A stretch of DNA of 64,000 nt, taken from NCBI GenBank assembly GCA_964199315.1, contig OZ116703.1, positions 8,866,001-8,930,000 on the forward strand. Reading direction: 5' to 3'. Made by a program: the position numbers and the translations under genes. Below the pieces are notes generated by a model. It searched no databases. It had not been told where the DNA came from and was given only the letters and a program-made list of their open reading frames with translations. The DNA comes from Orbicella franksi (Eukaryota). Shown piece by piece: positions 7,230 through 52,500 of the stretch (the stretch's first letter is position 1; every line of letters begins with the position of its first letter).

Positions 7230-7437
7230 CATATGTTGATGATAATTCTGCTGTCGAAACACCACCATTTGTCCTAGATGATATACTTTGGATTCTTGTG
7301 AACAGCGTACTCGACGATATACTTGGCAACACACTTGAAGCGAAGCCTGAACTAAGAACAGAGCTTGAACTGGTTGCGTCCAATTTCGCCGCAAACAAAA
7401 CAACTAACACGGCAAAACCTCTCCATAACAGGTCCAT
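7230..7437 (-). CDS. First coding exon (signal peptide) of the mucin-like gene
   Basis: ATG at 7437, MDLLWRGFAVLVVLFAAKLDA (hydrophobic signal peptide) followed by an S/T-rich segment. The donor G|gtaag at 7230/7229 is phase 1, matching the phase-1 acceptor at 4312 (G+CA = Ala). Confidence 0.85.
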
Positions 7438-8369
7438 ACGAATCCTTATTTCGCTCGTAAACTGCCACATTACGTTTGACTTTTTATCCGGTTCATCTGG
7501 ATTGGTAGTACAGCTATTCGTTCACTTGGAAATTAAATATGATCGTTGCTTTCAGGCTGTTTTGCGACCGCCATTTCCATAATTCCATGACAACCATGCT
7601 CTGTTGCATGCCGAAAATAGCCCGACGAGGTCATGTGATCTTTTCCGATATCTAGTTCAAAAGTGATTTATCGTATATGTTCCTTTGTGCCGTATCAGTC
7701 CCATATTACTATATTTCGGTATATCGAGTTTTATAACTGCAAGGATTCACTTTTTGTAGTTATTTCAAAGCACTTTATCAAAAAAAGAAAAAAATAATAA
7801 TTTCGACAGAAACAGTCACGCAACAATTCTTGCATGACGAATAATTGTAAACCTAATTCCCAGCTTTTCTCTCCTAGGCTTCAGATTGAAATGAATGAAT
7901 TGATTTCTCTCTTTTTCCAGCCGTTCTTGAGGGACAAACGCGCAGGGAACCATTTTGAAAGCACAGCTTTTGTATTTTGTGCTCGCACTTCACGTGACTG
8001 ATGCCAAATTGTCTATAAGTTGCATACCAGAGCAGTGACGTGTCATCAGTCACGCAAGGACAAAGTGATCGATTACTTGTGAATATTTTTTGCGGAGCAT
8101 CAAGATATTACATTGCCATTGTTCGCCGACATCAAACTAGCATTTAACAGGTGGTGTGACAAACTTCATTTTAGATCTGTTTTCACCTGCTCTCATCGGG
8201 CATAAATATTTACGCGGGTGTCTTCAATACAGCGCCACTACCGTAATCATGGGGATCGGCACAGGCAGATTGTTCATCCATTCGATTCGACCATCGATAA
8301 CGAAATGTCCTCAGTTCGAAAGCGTTTGAGCAGCTATGGACAGCCAAGCTAGTGGTTTTGGTCGACAAA

Positions 8370-11300
8370 ATGGAGATTTTCAAGGATCTAAGGATTCCTC
8401 TGCCAAAAACGTTCGAGTCGCCAAGCCTAACTCGCTTAGGAAAATTTCAACGCGGAATTTTGACAGCCGCGCTTCTTGTGATACCCACGTTGCAGGCGAT
8501 CTTGTGGCAGCGGGAGCAAGATCATTTTAGTTCTGAATTTCGTTGTGGAGTAAAGGATGGAGATGTCGATAGCGCTGTGAGCGAACGAGAGGACCTTACA
8601 TTTCAGTTCTTCCAAGACTACACGAACAAATACAGCGGCGTTTCGCAGGGAATGTTTGTAATTTTCGTTTTACTGAATCTAATAATCGTCCATTTCTACA
8701 TGTCCTTTGTCTCCGATCGATTTAATTCGTGGCTCAAGCTTAGGACGACAAAACAGCGTGGCAAAATTCTAGCCGAGTTGAAGGGTTCGACTGCTGTGTT
8801 TAAAGCTCACTCTATTCAACTCGGCCTGAGGTTGATGTGTGCCGTGATCTTTATTGTTTACAACTGCCTCGCGCACTCAATTGTCTTACCCACGGAGAGG
8901 GAATATCTACCTTTCGACGCAATCTCGTTCGCTACTGCAGTTATATGCTACGCTGATCAAGCTTTCGAATCATCAATCTTTAATATAGCTTTGTTGACCT
9001 TTGCGACATTTTCTGGCACTCTGAATTTGACTGAACTCGTCTATACTTGGCAAGAAACGAGCGCCTTCGAGCGAATCTCAGACTATTATTTCTGCACGCT
9101 TTTGTTACGGCACAATAGCGTGACAGAGTCCACTAATATGCTGATAGAGAAGGAATTGTTCTTGGAAAAACAAAGGGAAAAGATACGCGATAAAAAGAGG
9201 CCAACAGTCCAACTACCACTGATGAAGTCTAGTAATGCAACAGTGCACAGTATCCCTTGTAATTTATTCATCTCTCAGCAGAAACTGAAATATAGAGGAG
9301 TTAAGAAACAGAAACACAAGCAAGAATTATTCAGAACTTACAGCAGAACTAAAAAAATCCCAGTTCGTTCGCTTGAGGACTTGTTAAAACCGAATAGAGA
9401 CTCGGCGACACCGAAGAGAATCCTTGTAACCGGGGCAGCGGGAATTGGAAAAACGGAGCTCACATTGCAGCTTGTGGAGCAATTCAATACTGCAGAAAGC
9501 GGATTTTGCAATCTTAATTTTGTTTTCATTTTCAATTTCAAAGAACTCGCTTTTATCGATAATCTCATTACTTTGCAAGACTTTCTTAATCACTCGGCTT
9601 TTTGTTCGAGACTGGGGGACATTGTGTACCGGAAGATTGCGTCAAATCCAGAAGAGGTCCTCCTTGTTTTTGATGGCCTCAACGAGTGGACTGTAAAGTC
9701 GTTCGTACAGCACACCTGCACGGGAGGAAATGAAGAGAAAATGACCGTGTCTTCTATCGTCTTAAAGCTTCTTTCCGGAGAACTTTTACCGGAATCAACT
9801 ATCATTGTCACCTCGCGACCAACACCCTTGCTATCGGAGATAGTAGAAATGGTGGCATTTGACCGGTATGTAGAGCTTGGTTGCTTTAAGCCAGAGGAGC
9901 TCAAGATCTACATCCAAGAGTTTTTCCAGCACAATAAAGAGCTTATCGCCACAGTGAGAAATCGCATTTCCAGCGAACCGAATCTTCAAGTTCTTTGCCG
10001 TTTACCTGAAAACTGCCATCTACTTTGTTTGTACTTAGACTTCGTGGCCTCAACGAGAACGTCACAAGAAGTCCAATCTCTCGAGTTACCCTCCTCGACA
10101 ACAGAAATCTTCGGGAGATCAATTGACACAGCAACAAACGCAGAATCCGACCAAAGTGAACACAAGACATTCCCATCGGATCACGTTATTTTCTCAAAGA
10201 ACTCTCTAGAAGTCTTCGAAAAGCTCTCGTGTCTCGCTTTTGAAGGAATAATGAACGAAAGGTATGTCTTTAGAAAAGAGGATCTCTCCCATGTTGAACT
10301 TAGTGCATTCGAGGCTGACTTTCTTGAGGAAGCTGGCCTTTTATGTCGCTCACGAGGCAATCTACTCAGACAAGCGGACGTATATTGCTTCAGTTGCCTT
10401 TCAGTCCAAGAGTATCTTGCCGCCAGAAGAATTGTTCAGTCTTCCTCTATAGGCGATTTGCGGGATTTTCTGGAAAAAGCCAACGAGAATCACTGCGCTA
10501 CTTTGCAATTCGTGGCTGGGTTATGTAAAGATGGAAAGGAAGGCAGGGGCCTTTTTGTGTGCTTGATGCAGCACTTAACTGAAGCTATCAAAGTGAACAG
10601 CTTTGTCCACGAACCAGTGATCGATAACCAAGCAATCATTTTTCTCTGCAAATGCCTCTTCGAAAACGGGACTAAACTGGGCCATCCTTTCGCAAGAGAA
10701 GCAACCTCTTCCATATCGTCAAAGCCTATCGTCTTCACAGAAATTGGCACGGACCCACTGGAAACACAAGCGATTCTTTACTGCTTGAAAGAGGCCATTG
10801 GGAGCAATGTAAAGAGGGTCATCTTCGAGAGCAATGCTATGGAAGACGACGGGTTCCGTCAGGTGGCCACCTCCATCTGCGAGGAGTCCTGCAAGTTGGA
10901 CCAAGTTAATCTGACAAGCTCAGGTATCACAGAGGACGCTATGCTGTCGTTCCTGGAAATAAGCGCAAGCCACTCTTTTCTTGGAATAAAGATTCTCGGG
11001 CTGAGAGGCAACGACATCTCAAGCGAGGGGGCGAGATACCTTGCGTGTTTGCTCTTCAACGACTGGTGCCATTTGGAAGAACTCCATCTTGGCAACAACA
11101 GAATCGGCGATCTGGGTGTGGAATATTTCAGTGAAGCCCTTTGCAGCGGAAGCAGCAGAATTCACACTTTAGACTTGAGTTCCAATGGAATAACCCACAA
11201 CGGTGTTTTCCACCTGAGCAGGGCTCTCAGAAGTCCAGTTTGTAATGTCAAACGACTGTACCTTCAGAAGAACAAAATTCTAGACTTCGGCATGCAAGAT

Positions 11301-11684
11301 CTCTGCGAATCACTTTGCACGGCAGATTGCAATCTAAGGGTCTTGTTCGCAAGTTCCAACGAGATCACTGACGACGGAATCATGTTTGTGGAAAAGGCTC
11401 TGGCACACAAGTCTTGCAACCTACAAGAGCTCTACCTTGGCTACAATCTAGTAACTGACAAGGGTGTTAAGAGTTTGCTGCAAGCATTGCCTACTCAGCA
11501 AATCAACCTGAAGGTTTTGTCCCTGGCCAACAACCCAATAACGGATGTTGGTGTGAAAATGCTGGCCCATGCCTTGAGAAACTCAAGCTGCAATCTACAT
11601 CGTCTTTGCATAAGTCTAGGAAGGCCACAAGTGGCTGCCACCAAGGCTTCGAAGCTCCAAGTACGATACGTTAATGCCTTCTAA
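8370..11684 (+). CDS. Intronless NLR-like protein: N-terminal 4-TM connexin-like domain, NACHT NTPase, RI-type LRRs (1104 aa from ATG 8370)
   Basis: Uninterrupted ORF 8352-11684 with first in-frame ATG at 8370. Walker A GAAGIGKT (9432-9455), Walker B LLVFDGLNE (9660-9686), sensor-1 IIVTSRP, LCRLPENCHLLC, WHD FSCLSVQEYLAA, about ten 28-aa LRRs, and four N-terminal hydrophobic helices. Confidence 0.93.
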   Translation: MEIFKDLRIPLPKTFESPSLTRLGKFQRGILTAALLVIPTLQAILWQREQDHFSSEFRCGVKDGDVDSAVSEREDLTFQFFQDYTNKYSGVSQGMFVIFVLLNLIIVHFYMSFVSDRFNSWLKLRTTKQRGKILAELKGSTAVFKAHSIQLGLRLMCAVIFIVYNCLAHSIVLPTEREYLPFDAISFATAVICYADQAFESSIFNIALLTFATFSGTLNLTELVYTWQETSAFERISDYYFCTLLLRHNSVTESTNMLIEKELFLEKQREKIRDKKRPTVQLPLMKSSNATVHSIPCNLFISQQKLKYRGVKKQKHKQELFRTYSRTKKIPVRSLEDLLKPNRDSATPKRILVTGAAGIGKTELTLQLVEQFNTAESGFCNLNFVFIFNFKELAFIDNLITLQDFLNHSAFCSRLGDIVYRKIASNPEEVLLVFDGLNEWTVKSFVQHTCTGGNEEKMTVSSIVLKLLSGELLPESTIIVTSRPTPLLSEIVEMVAFDRYVELGCFKPEELKIYIQEFFQHNKELIATVRNRISSEPNLQVLCRLPENCHLLCLYLDFVASTRTSQEVQSLELPSSTTEIFGRSIDTATNAESDQSEHKTFPSDHVIFSKNSLEVFEKLSCLAFEGIMNERYVFRKEDLSHVELSAFEADFLEEAGLLCRSRGNLLRQADVYCFSCLSVQEYLAARRIVQSSSIGDLRDFLEKANENHCATLQFVAGLCKDGKEGRGLFVCLMQHLTEAIKVNSFVHEPVIDNQAIIFLCKCLFENGTKLGHPFAREATSSISSKPIVFTEIGTDPLETQAILYCLKEAIGSNVKRVIFESNAMEDDGFRQVATSICEESCKLDQVNLTSSGITEDAMLSFLEISASHSFLGIKILGLRGNDISSEGARYLACLLFNDWCHLEELHLGNNRIGDLGVEYFSEALCSGSSRIHTLDLSSNGITHNGVFHLSRALRSPVCNVKRLYLQKNKILDFGMQDLCESLCTADCNLRVLFASSNEITDDGIMFVEKALAHKSCNLQELYLGYNLVTDKGVKSLLQALPTQQINLKVLSLANNPITDVGVKMLAHALRNSSCNLHRLCISLGRPQVAATKASKLQVRYVNAF
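8418..9053 (+). other. Four-transmembrane connexin-like domain
   Basis: SLTRLGK, WQREQ..SEFRC, LGLRLMCAVIF and VICYADQAFESSIF..TLNLTELVY align by eye with Cx26 STSIGK, WGDEQADFVC, FFRVIFEAAF and VDCFVSRPTEKTVF..LLNVTELCY (Cx26 sequence recalled from memory). Confidence 0.75.
9414..10440 (+). other. NACHT NTPase with HD1/WHD subdomains
   Basis: KRILVTGAAGIGKTELT, FVFIFNFKEL, VLLVFDGLNEW, IIVTSRP, LCRLP, SVQEYLAA motifs in the expected order. Confidence 0.92.
10806..11620 (+). other. Ribonuclease-inhibitor-like leucine-rich repeats
   Basis: Repeats of the type HLEELHLGNNRIGDLGVEYFSEAL, NVKRLYLQKNKILDFGMQDLCESL and NLQELYLGYNLVTDKGVKSLLQAL, spaced about 28 aa apart. Confidence 0.93.
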
Positions 11685-12321
11685 ACGAAGGGTTCTCGTA
11701 GAACCAACAGGAAAACGGCTCAATCTTGAAACTTCCTGTTTGTAGACACTACGTCAAACGTTTTCCCAGTAAGCAGTGTCTTTCCGGATAAGAACCATTT
11801 TTGCCATCAGACCTTTCGTTTTTATTGGTCACCAAGGTTTGCATGCCCCACCAAATTGCCCCAGCCAAACGAATTTGGTGACCCTTTTTACCATTGTTGC
11901 TACGCGTTTGACAATACGTTATTTTGTACTATTTGTAGCCCGGCATAGATGTCATTTTGGATCACAGACGCTTAGCGTTTCGAATTTATTTTGATTAGTA
12001 AAGCCCTCGATTCAGTAATTACAGGTCATATTAGCGATACAACGAATTCTTTCAAAAAAACAGAATTTCTTTTATAGCTGAGGGTTTAAATGAATCTTTA
12101 GCAAATACCTTTAAGATACGCATTGTTATATCTTATCCTGAAGTATCGCTTAATTCAGTCACTGGAATTTAAAAAGCACTAGATTAAAACCAATGTCATG
12201 ACTCTAGAGTATTCAATAAATTATTTTTTGCTGCAGGTGAAGCTTCCGTTCCCCCGTCCTACTGCTAAATAAATAAAATAAAATAAGTTAACACGTTTCA
12301 CGGACGTTGTGTGGCATTCGT

Positions 12322-21196: not shown

Positions 21197-35655
<14,459 letters not shown>

Positions 35656-46568: not shown

Positions 46569-49500
46569 TCACAGCAATCTACCACGACACTCCGCTGACC
46601 CACAGTAGCAGTGTAAAACTTTGCCTTTGACGCTGTCCACTTCGTACGCGTAGTCCCAGGTTAGCTCGGTTCCAGCTGCAACGTTTCTGGAGAGGAACGG
46701 GAAGAAAGAAGTTAATTTACATGATGACGCGATCAAATTAGACTTTAGCAGACTTTTTTCTCGAAGAGCGAGAAGATATAGACGCGAGATTTTACAAATG
46801 ACCCTGGACGTGTACCAACATGGCTGTTCCAGTTGGTTTGTACGGTGACAAAAACAAGGTACTTTCCACTTCCCTATGAAAAGTATAGGTAATCGTATCC
46901 GTGCGAGTGCAATTTATTATTTGCACTTCGAGTGATATTTGAGAATTCCCTCAAAACTGCACGAGCCTTCAGGTGAGTCCAATTTGGAAGGATCTTCAAA
47001 CATCACGAGTAGTGTATATCCTTTACTGGTCGAGCTTTCATACGATTGTCATTTATTATATGACTGAGAAAATTTCGAACACACCACCATTAACTTACAC
47101 TGCAGTACGAGGTAAAAATCATCGATAAATGGCCAATCAGCCTCTCAGCCAATCACAATGAGGTATATTTCTTAGTCATATAATAACAATCAAAACAACA
47201 TGGACTAAAATAACCTCCATGTCCACAGTCACTTACTGTTGAGTGAAGAACGCCACCCAAGGAAATCGGAGGTCATGAGTGTCTACAAACACATTCTGGA
47301 CAAACAGGTTTGGCGAGCAGCTATGCTGTTGAAGCAAACACAAAACTGGTTTATCAAACAGGTTTGGCGGGCAGTCGTGCTGTCCAGTCGCAATGAAAAC
47401 TTGCTTAGTTTCGTACATTAAAGAGATGACACATTTTTTTCGACGACGAACGCGTGGAAAATGGAAAACAATCGAATTCTCTTTTAGAGGGTAGACAGCA
47501 AATAACAGTATAGGATTTAGAAAGTGTTAGAAAACAAACAGTCGACACGTATCTCCACAAAGTATTAAATTGAAAGAACTAAGGTTAACCAAACAAAGCA
47601 GTAAACAACACATTATTTCATGAAAAACAGTAAGTTAACAAACTCACATTTAAATATCGCCCACAGTTCCCGTAAGCCTTTGCGTCGATGACGTAGCAAT
47701 GCTCTTCTCCAAACATCAACCTCGTGCTCAGTCTCTTGCTGCTAGCAGAGGACTGGCGTGACAGAGAGGGGCGTGAGGGCGAGGGAGTGTTGGGTGAGGC
47801 TTTTATCGAAGGACTGGTGCTAGTGGGTTGAGAACGAGAGTAGTGAATCTTGGGCTTGTTAGCTGAAAAAACAAAAAAGAGAAAATCCGGCACCACAAAA
47901 GTTACTAACTTAAAGAAATTTCTACAATGCAGAGCTATTCTAAGGATGTTTACTTGGGTAACTTAGGGTTAGGGTTAGGGTTTTTGAAAACAAAACTTCA
48001 GTTTGTTCGTCTTTATCTTCTTAATCTTACAGTGGATTCAGGTTGAGAGTTAAACGCTCTCAGGTGTCTCAGGTCGTTGTAATGGTTGATAGCGTTGCAA
48101 AGCAAAAAGTCCGACAAAACTTGGAGTTCTGTCCAGGAAAAAAAAGGCGTGTTCACTAAATAATAAACAGCGATTCCACAAATCGGCTGGGAAAATCATT
48201 GACGACGTCTCGCGCCCTCTTTAAAAGCATGAATCACAGCATTTCTTCGATCAGAAGATGAAGATTTTTCTGGCAGGTGAGAGTGACTACTCTTGGTTAT
48301 GGCCCACACTTGGAAACGTTCCAACGCGCCTTTTCCGAGACAGAATGTTGTCATCCCCGCAATGTCATTCCCACAATGCATCCTCCCAGATCCAAGATGG
48401 CGGACGACTTGAGAGGGGATGAAAAGTCGCTTTTGAAAGGACGAAATGGTGGTATTACATGTTGCGTCTCCACACGGTTTAATAATTCAAGGAGAAACGC
48501 TGAGTTTAATTATATTTTCCCGAAAGAGCCTGCATTGTGAGAGAAGTGGATAGAATATATCGAGAGACGAGGCACCCAGTATGTTCTGCACGCTTTGCAG
48601 GTGGGAAGAAAAGCTACGTGAATAATGTAGAAACCGTATTTGCTGACTGTGCATTTGAATTGTTGCTGTAGATATAATTAAGTGTGAGTTCCGAAACCAG
48701 CAGATTTCAGAGGGCAAGCCTCCGTCCGCACTGTCCGCTTTCTTGGACTGGACTTGATGAATACATCTGCCATGCAAGCGCGCCTCGTAGAGGGAAAGGA
48801 CCGTTGGTGTCATTATATGGATTTTGAAATTAAAAACAAGGTGAAACTTCTAAGAACAAAATAGTCAAAGACCTCAGACTTCAGTTCAAAGATAAAGGAC
48901 AAATCAGACAAATGAATCTTACTTTTTAACTTTTTCGCCGGCGGCTTTGACACCCCAGTGCTTCGTTTAGAGCTTCCGGTTGAAATCTCCGACTTCCGGT
49001 CTAAAGACTCGGGCTTTGAAACGTCCGAACGTAAACTAGACGGCGAAGGCGGAAAAGAATCCATGTTTTCTGTCTCTGGAGATGAAGGCTCCGATATAGG
49101 TTCAACCCGAATACCCAAAGCATTTTCTACGCTGGGGGATTTTTCAGTCGAACTTTTGTCGACATCATCCGCAATCGACTGGTCTAAGTCCATTGGCGTC
49201 GGCCCATCCGTTCCATTCACACTAGAGTCCGAAGAAGACGGATGAGCCGTGAGAACGCGTTTAGTTAACCGTGAAATCATGTCCTCTAGCGTGTTTGAAA
49301 CCCGACGAGTGGGATTCATTTTAGTTAATACAGGCGGTTCGTCCGCCACTGTCGTGTTCTTCGCAGCCAGTTTAGAGAGATCTTCTGCGGAGATGAGAGA
49401 AGGCGCAGAATCCGAATCCTCAACCGGTTTTGCAGCGCTCTCTGATTTATCCTGTTTATCAGGTTTTTCTGGTTCGACCGGTTCGGGTGTAACCCTTCCA

Positions 49501-52500
49501 TGTTTGATATGAGGCTGGAGATCTGTTTTCTGAGAAGCTGAAATTAAGTCTCTATCTTTGAATGTTGAAATTCCTTCAACATCAGCTTCTGTATCGCTCG
49601 TTAACACAATAATTTTCATATCGTTTCCTCCTGCAGAATAAGCAGGTCTGCCCTTGTGTGTATCGTCCTTGTCCGTTATAATCCTCGCCGTATCTGCCTC
49701 GTTGTCTACTGGTATGTCCTGGGAGGTGTTGTCCCGCATTTTCTGGCAAAACGACTCGTCGACTTCATCGAAATCAAAGTCACTGCTCTGACTGATGTTC
49801 TTTTCTTCGTCATCTACGAAAAAAGCAATAAAGTTACACATTTAGGCATTATTTCACCACAACAGGATAATTATAAAGAAAGCTTTCCCTTTGTCCACTA
49901 GATTCCCTCAATAACTCGCCATTTGCCACAGCCATTTCACTGTCATTTCTTCGTCTCTCAACCCAAACACTGAGTCTGGATTTCAAGCCTAATTTTATAC
50001 ACTTACATAAAAACAGGCAAAATAAAGTTAAGATGTCTTGCCACGGCATATGCTTACTAGCCAGTCTCCGATGCCATTAGCACGTATCTGGAGTTCAGTG
50101 CCCCAATCACCAGACCACTGCGCCCCACTAACGTGATATTTCACAATTAGATTATGAGCTTGATATTTCCATGGGCACCCTCGTCAACTAACACGCATAG
50201 AAATCGAGAGTGAATAATCTAATTATTTTAGTATAAATCTACTAGGCGTTCAGAATTATATCTAAATTCTCTTCGCAGACACTTTGAAAACGAAAAGAAG
50301 AGGCCGCCATTTTGTTAACAAGCGCACACTGCTGGGCTACTCGAATGGATAGTGAGTAGCGCAGCCAATCAGAGAACGGCATTCCTGATAGAACGCTAGT
50401 AGATTTATATTAAATATCTACAGAAATGCAAGCAAAGCAGCATTAATTTCCAAGTTGTTTATGAGTTCAATTTCCATACTATAAACTCGAATAGTAAGAT
50501 AAGGAGCCAAAAGCTCCTAGGAAACCTCATCCGTTCCCCCCCATCGTTAAACGACACCACATGACTCTAAAAACAACAGAAACAAGGTTGAATTTTCGCC
50601 GAGGTATTTACCTCTCAACTGCTTAACACTCTCCGCATCTTTCACATCTTTTTCATCCCTTTTTACTACAGCTTCTTTTGTCATCACGACGGTTTCCGCG
50701 CCTGACTGGACACTAATCTTTCCAGTCCCTTCACCCGTCATCTTTTTCAAAAAGGCGGCTGCAAGCTTCTGGTCGTCATGGTTACGCTTTAATGCTATGT
50801 AACACCTAGAAGGCAAATATTAGTAAAATGCAATGCAAGTCAGCGGATTTGGATGTAGAAAAAGATGTAGTTCGTTTACAAAATGTAAACAGAACTAAAT
50901 GCTGCAAGATTAAAATCGTTTAAACTAATCGTGGGAGAAATTAATGTAATAAACGATTTTGCCTTATTTAGTTTAAAATAAGCTTTTATCTCTTTAATCG
51001 CGGCTGGCGCTAGGACGGGGTTGAAACATGCCCTCATACAACATTTCACTTTCAACTTCTCTCCAGCTCGAATGCAAACTTGGTACCACTTAACGACCCT
51101 ACAAACGCCTGTTTTTTCGCTGTTCTCAAATTATTGAAAAGTTTCTCCTCTGCAAAGAAAGACAAACTTCTAACTGAAGAAAGCGTTTGTTAATAGAACG
51201 TGTGTCACTATCGCGATAACAATCCTGCGGCTTATATTTGGTGGGCTTGATATTATTTTCGAGAGGGTGACACTCGCTATCGAAAGGAATTTCCGTTTCG
51301 AAAATATTTGAGGTTAGATTTGGAAGGGATTAGTTTGCGTATGGAAAATTAACAGTATGTGGATATCGCCGGCGGGTTACTCTCGCCTGGATTTTACGGT
51401 ATGGACAGATATCTGTCACGACTAGAAAGGCGTTTCTTGGCGAACGATTATGTTCGTAGTAGTCTCTGAGGCACACTACGCCGGAGGAATTTGAAAACGT
51501 AACAATCACCGGCCATTTTGGACTTGTGTTTGAGGAAAACTCGGTCTGGGAAATCACATGATTCCCGTGATGCCATCGTTTTCGAAAAGCTATATTTTCA
51601 ATTGTTTTCCGTCCACACTGAAACGCAAAGCCGGCGTTTCAAATTCCTCAGATTTGAAGAGCGTTTTCGAAAAGTTCCGTTTTCGTTACGGATTAGTGCG
51701 GACGATAAGGCCTAACCGTAGAAATAAAGTTGCGTTTTCAAATTCCTCCGGCGTGGACGGAGAGGCGAACGTGACACAACAAATATCTGTCAAGAAATGG
51801 TTCTGGAGACTATATTTAATAAATACGAAAATTAAACTTGCCATTTTTCATCCGCAAGGTGTGATAAACAGTGAGCTTTAGACTCTCTTTCAACCATCAA
51901 CGTTTCCTCTCCTTGTACACCGCTGTCGTGGATATTAAACGCAAATAAATCGTGTTTACAATATGGAACTCAGTTTCAGGAGTTGCTTTCACAAATGAGC
52001 CTCTGAGAGCGGCAAAAGAGAACTGACTACACAATCACCGAGCATTCTGGAATTCCTTTTGATGTAATTATTACAAACCATGTGTAGTTCTAACCACCGA
52101 AGGAAAAAAATGTGCTGACTTAGCAAATGCTACCAGATAAACGAGTCAGAAATGGCGCGGGTAACTATGAAAACAAGGACTCTTTAACGGCAAGATAAAA
52201 GTAATATAGAATACGAAACGAAAGAAAACTAAAGAAAAGAAAAGAAAACAAGAGACCAACAAAAGAAAATTTTTCCTACCGTTTTCTCTTTTCGCTTTTC
52301 CTTCCAGATCTCTGTGGAATAAAAAAAAGCACAATACTTTGATCATTTTCTGATCAATAAGGCTTGTTTGCTAATTGCCTTTAAAAAGAGGTTGAGAACA
52401 TTTTCTTTTCAGTTCTTCAAGGCCCAATGTTTCAGTTAGACAAAACCAACCTTCATCAGGGACTTTGAATAAAATCTGATTCAAACATACTTTACTCTAA

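Follow-up and report, generated by a model that had tools for sequence, protein, structure and literature searches.

Can a connexin-like domain that keeps a single cysteine in each extracellular loop still form a channel, and what would such a domain do at the head of a NOD-like receptor (NLR), an immune receptor with a NACHT domain and leucine-rich repeats (LRRs)? This question is raised by a gene of the stony coral Orbicella franksi, located at positions 8370-11684 (forward strand) of a 64,000-nucleotide stretch of contig OZ116703.1 (assembly GCA_964199315.1, positions 8,866,001 to 8,930,000), referred to below as the window. An initial annotation, made from the letters alone, had predicted from these cysteines a hemichannel that does not dock.

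The explanation that we consider probable is that the gene encodes a membrane NLR whose connexin-like (CxL) domain carries one inter-loop disulfide, C59-C193, and acts as a non-junctional large-pore channel. According to this proposal, residues 1-257 would form a CxL four-helix domain, with a cytosolic NACHT nucleoside triphosphatase (NTPase) and the LRRs behind it. C59 and C193 would form the sole remaining inter-loop disulfide, stapling a strand of extracellular loop 1 (EL1) to the hairpin of extracellular loop 2 (EL2). By analogy with the anthozoan CxL proteins that have been assayed, the domain would assemble as a hemichannel and would thereby hold the NLR at a membrane.

The gene, its transcript and its protein

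The coding sequence is a single open reading frame (ORF) of 1104 amino acids plus the stop, in a single exon. Pfam and hydropathy give the order of the protein as a four-transmembrane (four-TM) domain at the N-terminus, then NACHT and then LRRs. The Walker A motif, GAAGIGKT, begins at residue 355, and a NOD2-type winged helix is also found by Pfam in the same protein. The main features are as follows:

8052..12262, + strand: transcript span, unspliced, with a 5′ leader of ~318 nt and a 3′ untranslated region (RNA contigs, stranded reads)
8370..11684, + strand: coding sequence of the connexin-like NLR (ORF list, N-terminus common to homologues, Pfam NACHT and LRR)
8370..9140, + strand: connexin-like four-TM domain, residues 1-257 (Pfam, family profile against the PDB, AlphaFold2 (AF2), Foldseek, VIA-align)
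9417..9932, + strand: NACHT NTPase, residues 350-521 (Pfam PF05729, E 3.8e-21)
10809..11620, + strand: LRR region, approximate limits, ~residues 814-1084 (Pfam LRR_6, LRR_4, LRR_1)

The gene is expressed, as 94-99% of the words sampled from it are present in RNA runs of at least eight studies. Two contigs assembled from polyA RNA-seq, of 4080 nt (8075-12154) and 4245 nt (8052-12262), are colinear with the window without gaps or joints and, consequently, the coding sequence must be one exon. The raw stranded reads, which are few in number, are all oriented as + strand RNA, and RNA depth is zero at 7770-7963, just upstream of the transcript.

The initial annotation had named the loop cysteines C65 and C199. 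Their codons (TGT at 8544-8546 and TGC at 8946-8948) are indeed in frame with the 8352/8370-11684 ORF, but the numbers had been counted from an in-frame GTG start at 8352. Homologues from other corals start with MEIFKDL or MDIFKDL at the position of the first in-frame ATG, 8370, and the residues are therefore numbered here as C59 and C193. The transcribed 5′ leader also contains an out-of-frame ATG at 8336, which opens a 64-codon frame (8336-8530) that overlaps the start at 8370 and may be an upstream ORF.

Topology of the N-terminal domain

Hydropathy reveals four TM segments and two loops between them that are net acidic, with an N-terminus and a middle loop that are net basic. From this charge distribution, the loops face the exterior and the NACHT-LRR part the cytosol (N-in/C-in), so that the domain has four TM helices, cytoplasmic termini and two extracellular loops, as expected of a connexin. 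The helices predicted by AF2 span residues 23-51, 93-126, 142-168 and 198-231, and strands are predicted within the loops at 57-62, 176-179 and 190-195. The elements of the domain are listed below:

8451..8507, + strand: TM1, residues 28-46, core without a basic residue (hydropathy; AF2 helix 23-51)
8508..8645, + strand: EL1, residues 47-92, acidic (hydropathy, column conservation)
8544..8546, + strand: C59, sole cysteine of loop 1, equivalent of the first connexin EL1 cysteine (present in 140/140 domains; predicted strand 57-62; FVC of Cx36)
8607..8609, + strand: F80, site of the lost second EL1 cysteine (cysteine in sister clades; aligned to Cx26 C64)
8646..8714, + strand: TM2, residues 93-115 (hydropathy, AF2)
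8814..8891, + strand: TM3, residues 149-174 (hydropathy, three-clade alignment, connexin alignments)
8892..8975, + strand: EL2, residues 175-202 (hydropathy, orthologue alignment)
8946..8948, + strand: C193, sole cysteine of loop 2, equivalent of the last connexin EL2 cysteine, Cx26 C180 (present in 139/140 domains; predicted strand 190-195)
8976..9044, + strand: TM4, residues 203-225 (hydropathy, AF2)

The claim of one cysteine per extracellular loop was borne out by the codons, the frame and the limits of the hydropathy loops: C59 is the only cysteine in 47-92 and C193 the only one in 175-202, each in the centre of its predicted strand. EL2 of the window protein is 6-8 residues shorter than that of its orthologues, with the KQWTP and FV stretches gone, in a clade where this loop has 28-34 residues. 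The deletion is common only to a 98%-identical protein (P0001) and a fragment (P0026), and it is considered real because the RNA contigs have no indels relative to the window.

Relation to connexins

Is this domain a connexin relative or only a protein of similar shape? The first answer, which had been given in the initial annotation, is supported by several lines of evidence. The window protein matches Pfam Connexin (PF00029 / IPR038359) over residues 138-226 (E 0.0017, 18.6 bits), and this family is the top match for 20 of 24 family members, with a best E value of 1.4e-7. A profile made from the window clade and its two sister clades (A3, see below) retrieved 23 distinct sequences from the PDB at E up to 10, all of them connexins, the best being GJC3 (E 2e-4) and Cx36 (E 0.004). 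No innexin, pannexin or LRRC8 was matched by sequence in the PDB profile searches. ESM features indicate connexin clusters (0.83), a result that we take as a lead only. With the profile of the window clade by itself (A1), the PDB search returned no connexin and the first AF2 model had a pLDDT of 47.7; both the search and the model improved only after the sister clades had been added.

For the domain, AF2 reached a pLDDT of 76.8 and a pTM of 0.70 when given the deeper alignment, and the model has the fold of a connexin protomer. Its best match in Foldseek is the Cx31.3 hemichannel (E 4e-5, TM 0.61), with LRRC8 and other connexins mixed among the following matches. In VIA-align, Cx26 and Cx32 have a Z of 14.0, with 189 of 199 Cx26 residues aligned. 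At a finer scale, the TM3 motif F144-x-A-x3-Q150-L151 ... R154 is conserved and common to connexin TM3. In TM2, where the register is uncertain, a Pro of the Porites-type domains lies about three positions away from the connexin Pro in the alignment, and at that site the window clade carries Asn without exception.

It could be argued that the domain is instead a separate branch of the large-pore fold common to LRRC8, pannexins and innexins. LRRC8 scores slightly above connexins in VIA-align (Z 14.8 vs 14.0), the top Foldseek matches include LRRC8 and PANX1, the ancestral state of the family has two cysteines per loop, as in innexins, and LRRC8 likewise couples such a domain to LRRs. However, Pfam, the PDB profile search and the ESM features all point to connexins alone, without any Innexin or Pannexin_like match in Pfam even at E 10, and the motifs around the cysteines and in TM3 are common with connexins. 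Additionally, for anthozoan domains of this type, Butler et al. (bioRxiv 10.64898/2026.06.13.731801, June 2026) obtained an HHpred probability of 99.95% to GJC3 and of 80% to Pannexin_like. As the fold alone cannot separate a connexin from LRRC8, the connexin identity rests on this sequence evidence, and we regard a separate branch as quite improbable.

Which connexin cysteines are kept

Connexins have three cysteines per extracellular loop; the window clade has one and its sister clades have two. In the connexin loops, a disulfide joins the first cysteine of one loop to the third of the opposite one (PMC8773650, citing Foote et al.). In the alignments, the counterpart of C193 and its equivalents is the last EL2 cysteine of Cx31.3, Cx36 and Cx26, and the Porites clade also matches the Arg and Lys-Thr that follow this cysteine in the connexin motif. 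For C59, the counterpart is the first EL1 cysteine (FVC) of Cx36. The additional cysteines of the sister clades align to Cx26 C64, in EL1, and to the first EL2 cysteine of Cx31.3 and Cx36. Given the C(1)-C(3) pairing of connexins, these alignments indicate that the residues kept are partners of each other and that those lost are another pair of partners, which, judged from the alignments, corresponds to Cx26 C64 and C169. The initial assignment of the kept residues to the mutual partners C53 and C180 of Cx26 thus agrees with the alignments, the EL1 stretch being weak by itself. The middle connexin pair is missing from all these coral domains.

Conservation of the pair

Orthologues were searched for with the N-terminal 300 residues. 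This search gave 25 full-length proteins of the same architecture, with 49-98% identity, including those from Acropora and Desmophyllum. In an alignment of 18 of these proteins, C59 is present in all and C193 in 17. Conservation within the domain is lowest in EL1, with a mean column identity of 0.59 and five invariant residues out of 46, C59 among them.

An exhaustive HMMER search with the A1 profile gave seven proteins and no free-standing four-TM relative. Exhaustive profile searching brought in two more distant groups. One is a small clade, P0027 and P0032, ~33% identical to the window protein; P0027 as a query brought in only one more protein. The other is a large Porites expansion, called Porites-type here, with 475 matches at E up to 0.01; hhalign relates it to the window clade with 94.8% probability. 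Across the three clades, which are 20-35% identical, there are only 12 invariant columns, and C59 and C193 are two of them. Extending the comparison to 140 full domains, an equivalent of C59 was found in every one and an equivalent of C193 in 139. The near-invariance of the pair among relatives, the subject of a test proposed with the initial annotation, is thus observed, and the retention of both residues exceeds what chance would give.

Although it is likely that C59 and C193 are bonded to each other, they could instead be free thiols that sense redox changes or could form bonds between subunits. Connexin extracellular cysteines have been proposed as redox sensors (PMC4729916), and odd numbers of cysteines do occur in the window clade. 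Among its 23 full domains, 19 have one cysteine per loop, three have one extra cysteine and one lacks the C193 equivalent. The last is P0018, where Tyr replaces C193; of those with an extra cysteine, P0021 (Desmophyllum) has it at position 80 without its old partner, and P0022 and P0017 have it two or three residues from a kept one. Against this possibility, C59 and C193 align to a bonded connexin pair (PMC8773650), each of them is central in a predicted loop strand, and 139 of 140 domains retain the two of them, whereas the other pair vanishes as a unit. Consequently, we find it rather unlikely that the two cysteines are not joined together.

A bolder idea, which we hold to be improbable, is that the C59-C193 bond acts as a redox- or ligand-sensitive switch: a change of the bond on the outside would alter the state of the channel, or of NACHT on the inside, with the variable EL1 as the sensing surface. 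If true, such a switch would couple NLR signalling directly to the chemistry outside the cell.

Loss of the second pair and paralogues in the genome

When was the second pair lost? Both sister clades have two cysteines per loop. Their extra EL1 cysteine aligns to F80 of the window protein, and their extra EL2 cysteine sits just after TM3. Position 80 is a cysteine in 118 of the 140 domains and F, H, Y, R or L within the window clade, and the extra EL2 cysteine is absent in every full-domain row of this clade. In a tree of full-length proteins, the Porites clade is outermost, followed by P0027/P0032 and then by a well-supported window clade of 26 rows. From this distribution, it looks like the second pair was lost once, on one branch, at the base of an orthologue group found throughout the Scleractinia.

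The coral's own genome contains both types. A search with the window domain returned only the window gene, and the Porites-type profile found at least 15 paralogues, a count that is itself a lower bound, with tandem arrays on two other contigs:

G000:C7:3.32-3.42 Mb and G000:C12:25.11-25.48 Mb: Porites-type paralogue arrays, four copies on one contig and eight on the other, loci L004-L015, all with two cysteines per loop

All of the 12 paralogues that were read have two cysteines in each loop, and the window gene is the only copy found with one in each. Three more divergent Porites-type matches (C12:8739787, C10:14329331 and C2:1087514) are outside these 12.

Other members of the Porites-type group have peculiarities of their own. 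For instance, at L002:8001-16633, an insertion of ~4.5 kb breaks up a connexin-like NLR gene at a point between TM3 and loop 2, and the remaining loop 2, TM4, NACHT and LRRs continue downstream of it. As the insertion encodes a reverse transcriptase and a tyrosine recombinase, it looks like a DIRS-type retroelement. In two other predicted proteins (P0034 and P0036), one connexin-like domain follows another, so that eight TM segments lie ahead of NACHT; these proteins may be true tandem fusions or merged gene models.

Docking and channel function

The initial annotation described the kept pair as membrane-proximal. This is doubtful because, in a model of Cx43, the equivalent pair C54-C198 (Cx26 C53-C180) adjoins the docking residues N55/T56/Q57 and D197 (PMC8773650). 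The two docking positions are variable in the window clade, where T, G, D, E, V or R follows the first cysteine in place of Asn and H, I, T, V or L precedes the last one in place of Asp.

Could the protein nevertheless dock head-to-head and form gap junctions between coral cells? Zebrafish Cx23, which has two pairs, still makes gap junctions (PMC4729916), so the number of cysteines by itself is a weak predictor of docking, and the initial argument from their count is weak. Protostome CxL domains also form junctions (bioRxiv 10.64898/2026.06.13.731801), and the window clade has short loops, not elaborate ones. Against docking, a Cx43 without cysteines forms hemichannels only (PMC4729916). The outcome predicted initially is better grounded on other evidence, as the Asn and Asp positions vary and three anthozoan CxL domains (pmCxL30, edCxL50 and plCxL60) form hemichannels without junctional plaques or dye transfer, which Butler et al. 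ascribe to the shape of the loops. Taking these results by analogy, absence of docking would be the likeliest outcome for this domain, and we judge gap junctions to be very improbable indeed.

The core of TM1 is devoid of basic residues, and TM3 of acidic ones. The position of the connexin TM3 Glu is occupied by A158, and R154 aligns to Cx26 R143. The equivalents of R32 and E147 had been described as lost together. They are indeed absent, but sister clades lack both as well and, thus, a paired loss in this lineage is unsupported.

These absences raise the possibility that the domain is a mere membrane anchor or scaffold that does not conduct, with a disulfide that only keeps the loops folded. 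Together with the lack of R32 and E147, two of the three connexin disulfides are gone, EL1 is poorly conserved, and single Cys-to-Ala changes of the extracellular cysteines close Cx46 hemichannels permanently (PMC9266770). By contrast, conservation across the Scleractinia is strong in the TM helices, in the cytoplasmic loop and in the N-terminal residues ahead of TM1 (mean identity 0.71-0.82, with seven invariant residues in 1-27), which would be needless for a simple anchor, and other anthozoan CxL domains that bear NACHT still conduct. On balance, a non-conducting anchor seems unlikely.

The preferred explanation of a non-junctional channel is in line with the behaviour of anthozoan CxL domains that have been expressed, which reach the plasma membrane and, upon depolarisation or exposure to CO2, release ATP and glutamate (bioRxiv 10.64898/2026.06.13.731801). 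It is likely that the window domain oligomerises and has channel activity as well. A four-copy complex prediction for residues 14-250, made without using the alignment and without controls, scored 0.00 and speaks neither for nor against assembly. Inspection by eye around K138 and K145, with no search run, gave no obvious match to the carbamylation (CO2) motif.

Several observations weigh against this explanation. Regarding connexin identity, the match of the window protein to Pfam Connexin is under the curated cut-off (18.6 vs 31.3 bits), and the fold match to LRRC8, with 230 residues aligned in VIA-align, is tied with that to connexins. Regarding the disulfide, the Cx36 EL1 stretch that contains C59 scores 1.2 bits, which is not significant alone, and AF2 confidence near C59 is moderate (pLDDT ~56-64). 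The existence of relatives with odd cysteine counts, such as P0018 and P0021, implies that unpaired thiols are tolerated, and the joint loss of the second pair, being a single evolutionary event, carries no statistical weight. Finally, as single cysteine mutants of Cx46 are closed (PMC9266770), the opening of a one-pair channel is not guaranteed.

Other features of the window

A transcribed block is present at 7230-7605. Its loose end at 7230 is common to three RNA runs and, in one run, the block lies within a 9.7-kb contig; it looks like an exon, either terminal or internal, of another gene next to it that is spliced. On the opposite strand, a protein kinase domain (Pfam Pkinase, E 2.4e-31) is represented by its N-terminal two thirds in an open frame at 34813-35634 (-), which probably corresponds to a single exon of a kinase gene. 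Two other long frames, 21200-22834 (-) and 48816-49841 (-), have no Pfam match.

Comparison with known systems

The closest known system is that of the connexin-like domains reported by Butler et al. in anthozoans, an annelid and a brachiopod (bioRxiv 10.64898/2026.06.13.731801). According to this preprint, anthozoan CxL domains are mostly N-terminal in NLRs, usually encoded by single-exon genes, and the window gene has the same order (CxL, NACHT, LRR) and a single coding exon. The preprint tables include two Acropora relatives: A0AAD9QQB8 (Supp. Table 1), which is our P0019 and falls inside the window clade in the tree, and XP_029210463 (Supp. Table 4, with Cx26 as top fold match), a member of its 90% cluster. 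As the preprint describes the main idea and lists these relatives, the architecture, the connexin homology, which extends connexin relatives beyond the chordates, and the hemichannel idea are already published. The one-pair state of the window clade is not mentioned there and is new. The anthozoan domains of the preprint have two cysteines per loop, like epsilon connexins, and “elaborate” loops, whereas the window clade has one cysteine per loop and short loops. The hemichannel behaviour shown for pmCxL30, edCxL50 and plCxL60 would be expected in the window clade by analogy. The clade thus slightly corrects the statement of two cysteines per loop for anthozoan domains.

Vertebrate connexins (Cx26/GJB2, Cx31.3/GJC3, Cx36/GJD2) have the same four-TM topology, protomer fold and single coding exon as the window gene. 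They also share with the window domain the TM3 motif with the Cx26 R143 equivalent (R154) and the first EL1 and last EL2 cysteines, with similar neighbouring residues. By contrast, they have three cysteines per loop, and the window domain has one, lacks R32 and E147, does not conserve the docking Asn and Asp and is fused to NACHT-LRR.

LRRC8/SWELL1, of the volume-regulated anion channels, has a pore domain of very similar fold and also joins a large-pore four-TM domain to cytosolic LRRs. However, it has no NACHT, its loop cysteines follow a different pattern, it belongs to the pannexin lineage and it has no sequence-level match to the window domain.

The epsilon connexin Cx23/GJE1 has a reduced set of cysteines in which, as in the coral domains, the middle pair is missing (PMC4729916). 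Cx23 keeps two pairs, its zebrafish form being junctional, and the window clade keeps one. A natural series thus runs, within one coral genome and its relatives, from the three pairs of vertebrate connexins through the two of Cx23 and most coral domains to the single pair of the window orthologue group, an old group that has kept this state across stony corals. Such a series offers a ready test of how many loop disulfides are needed for connexin folding, trafficking and gating.

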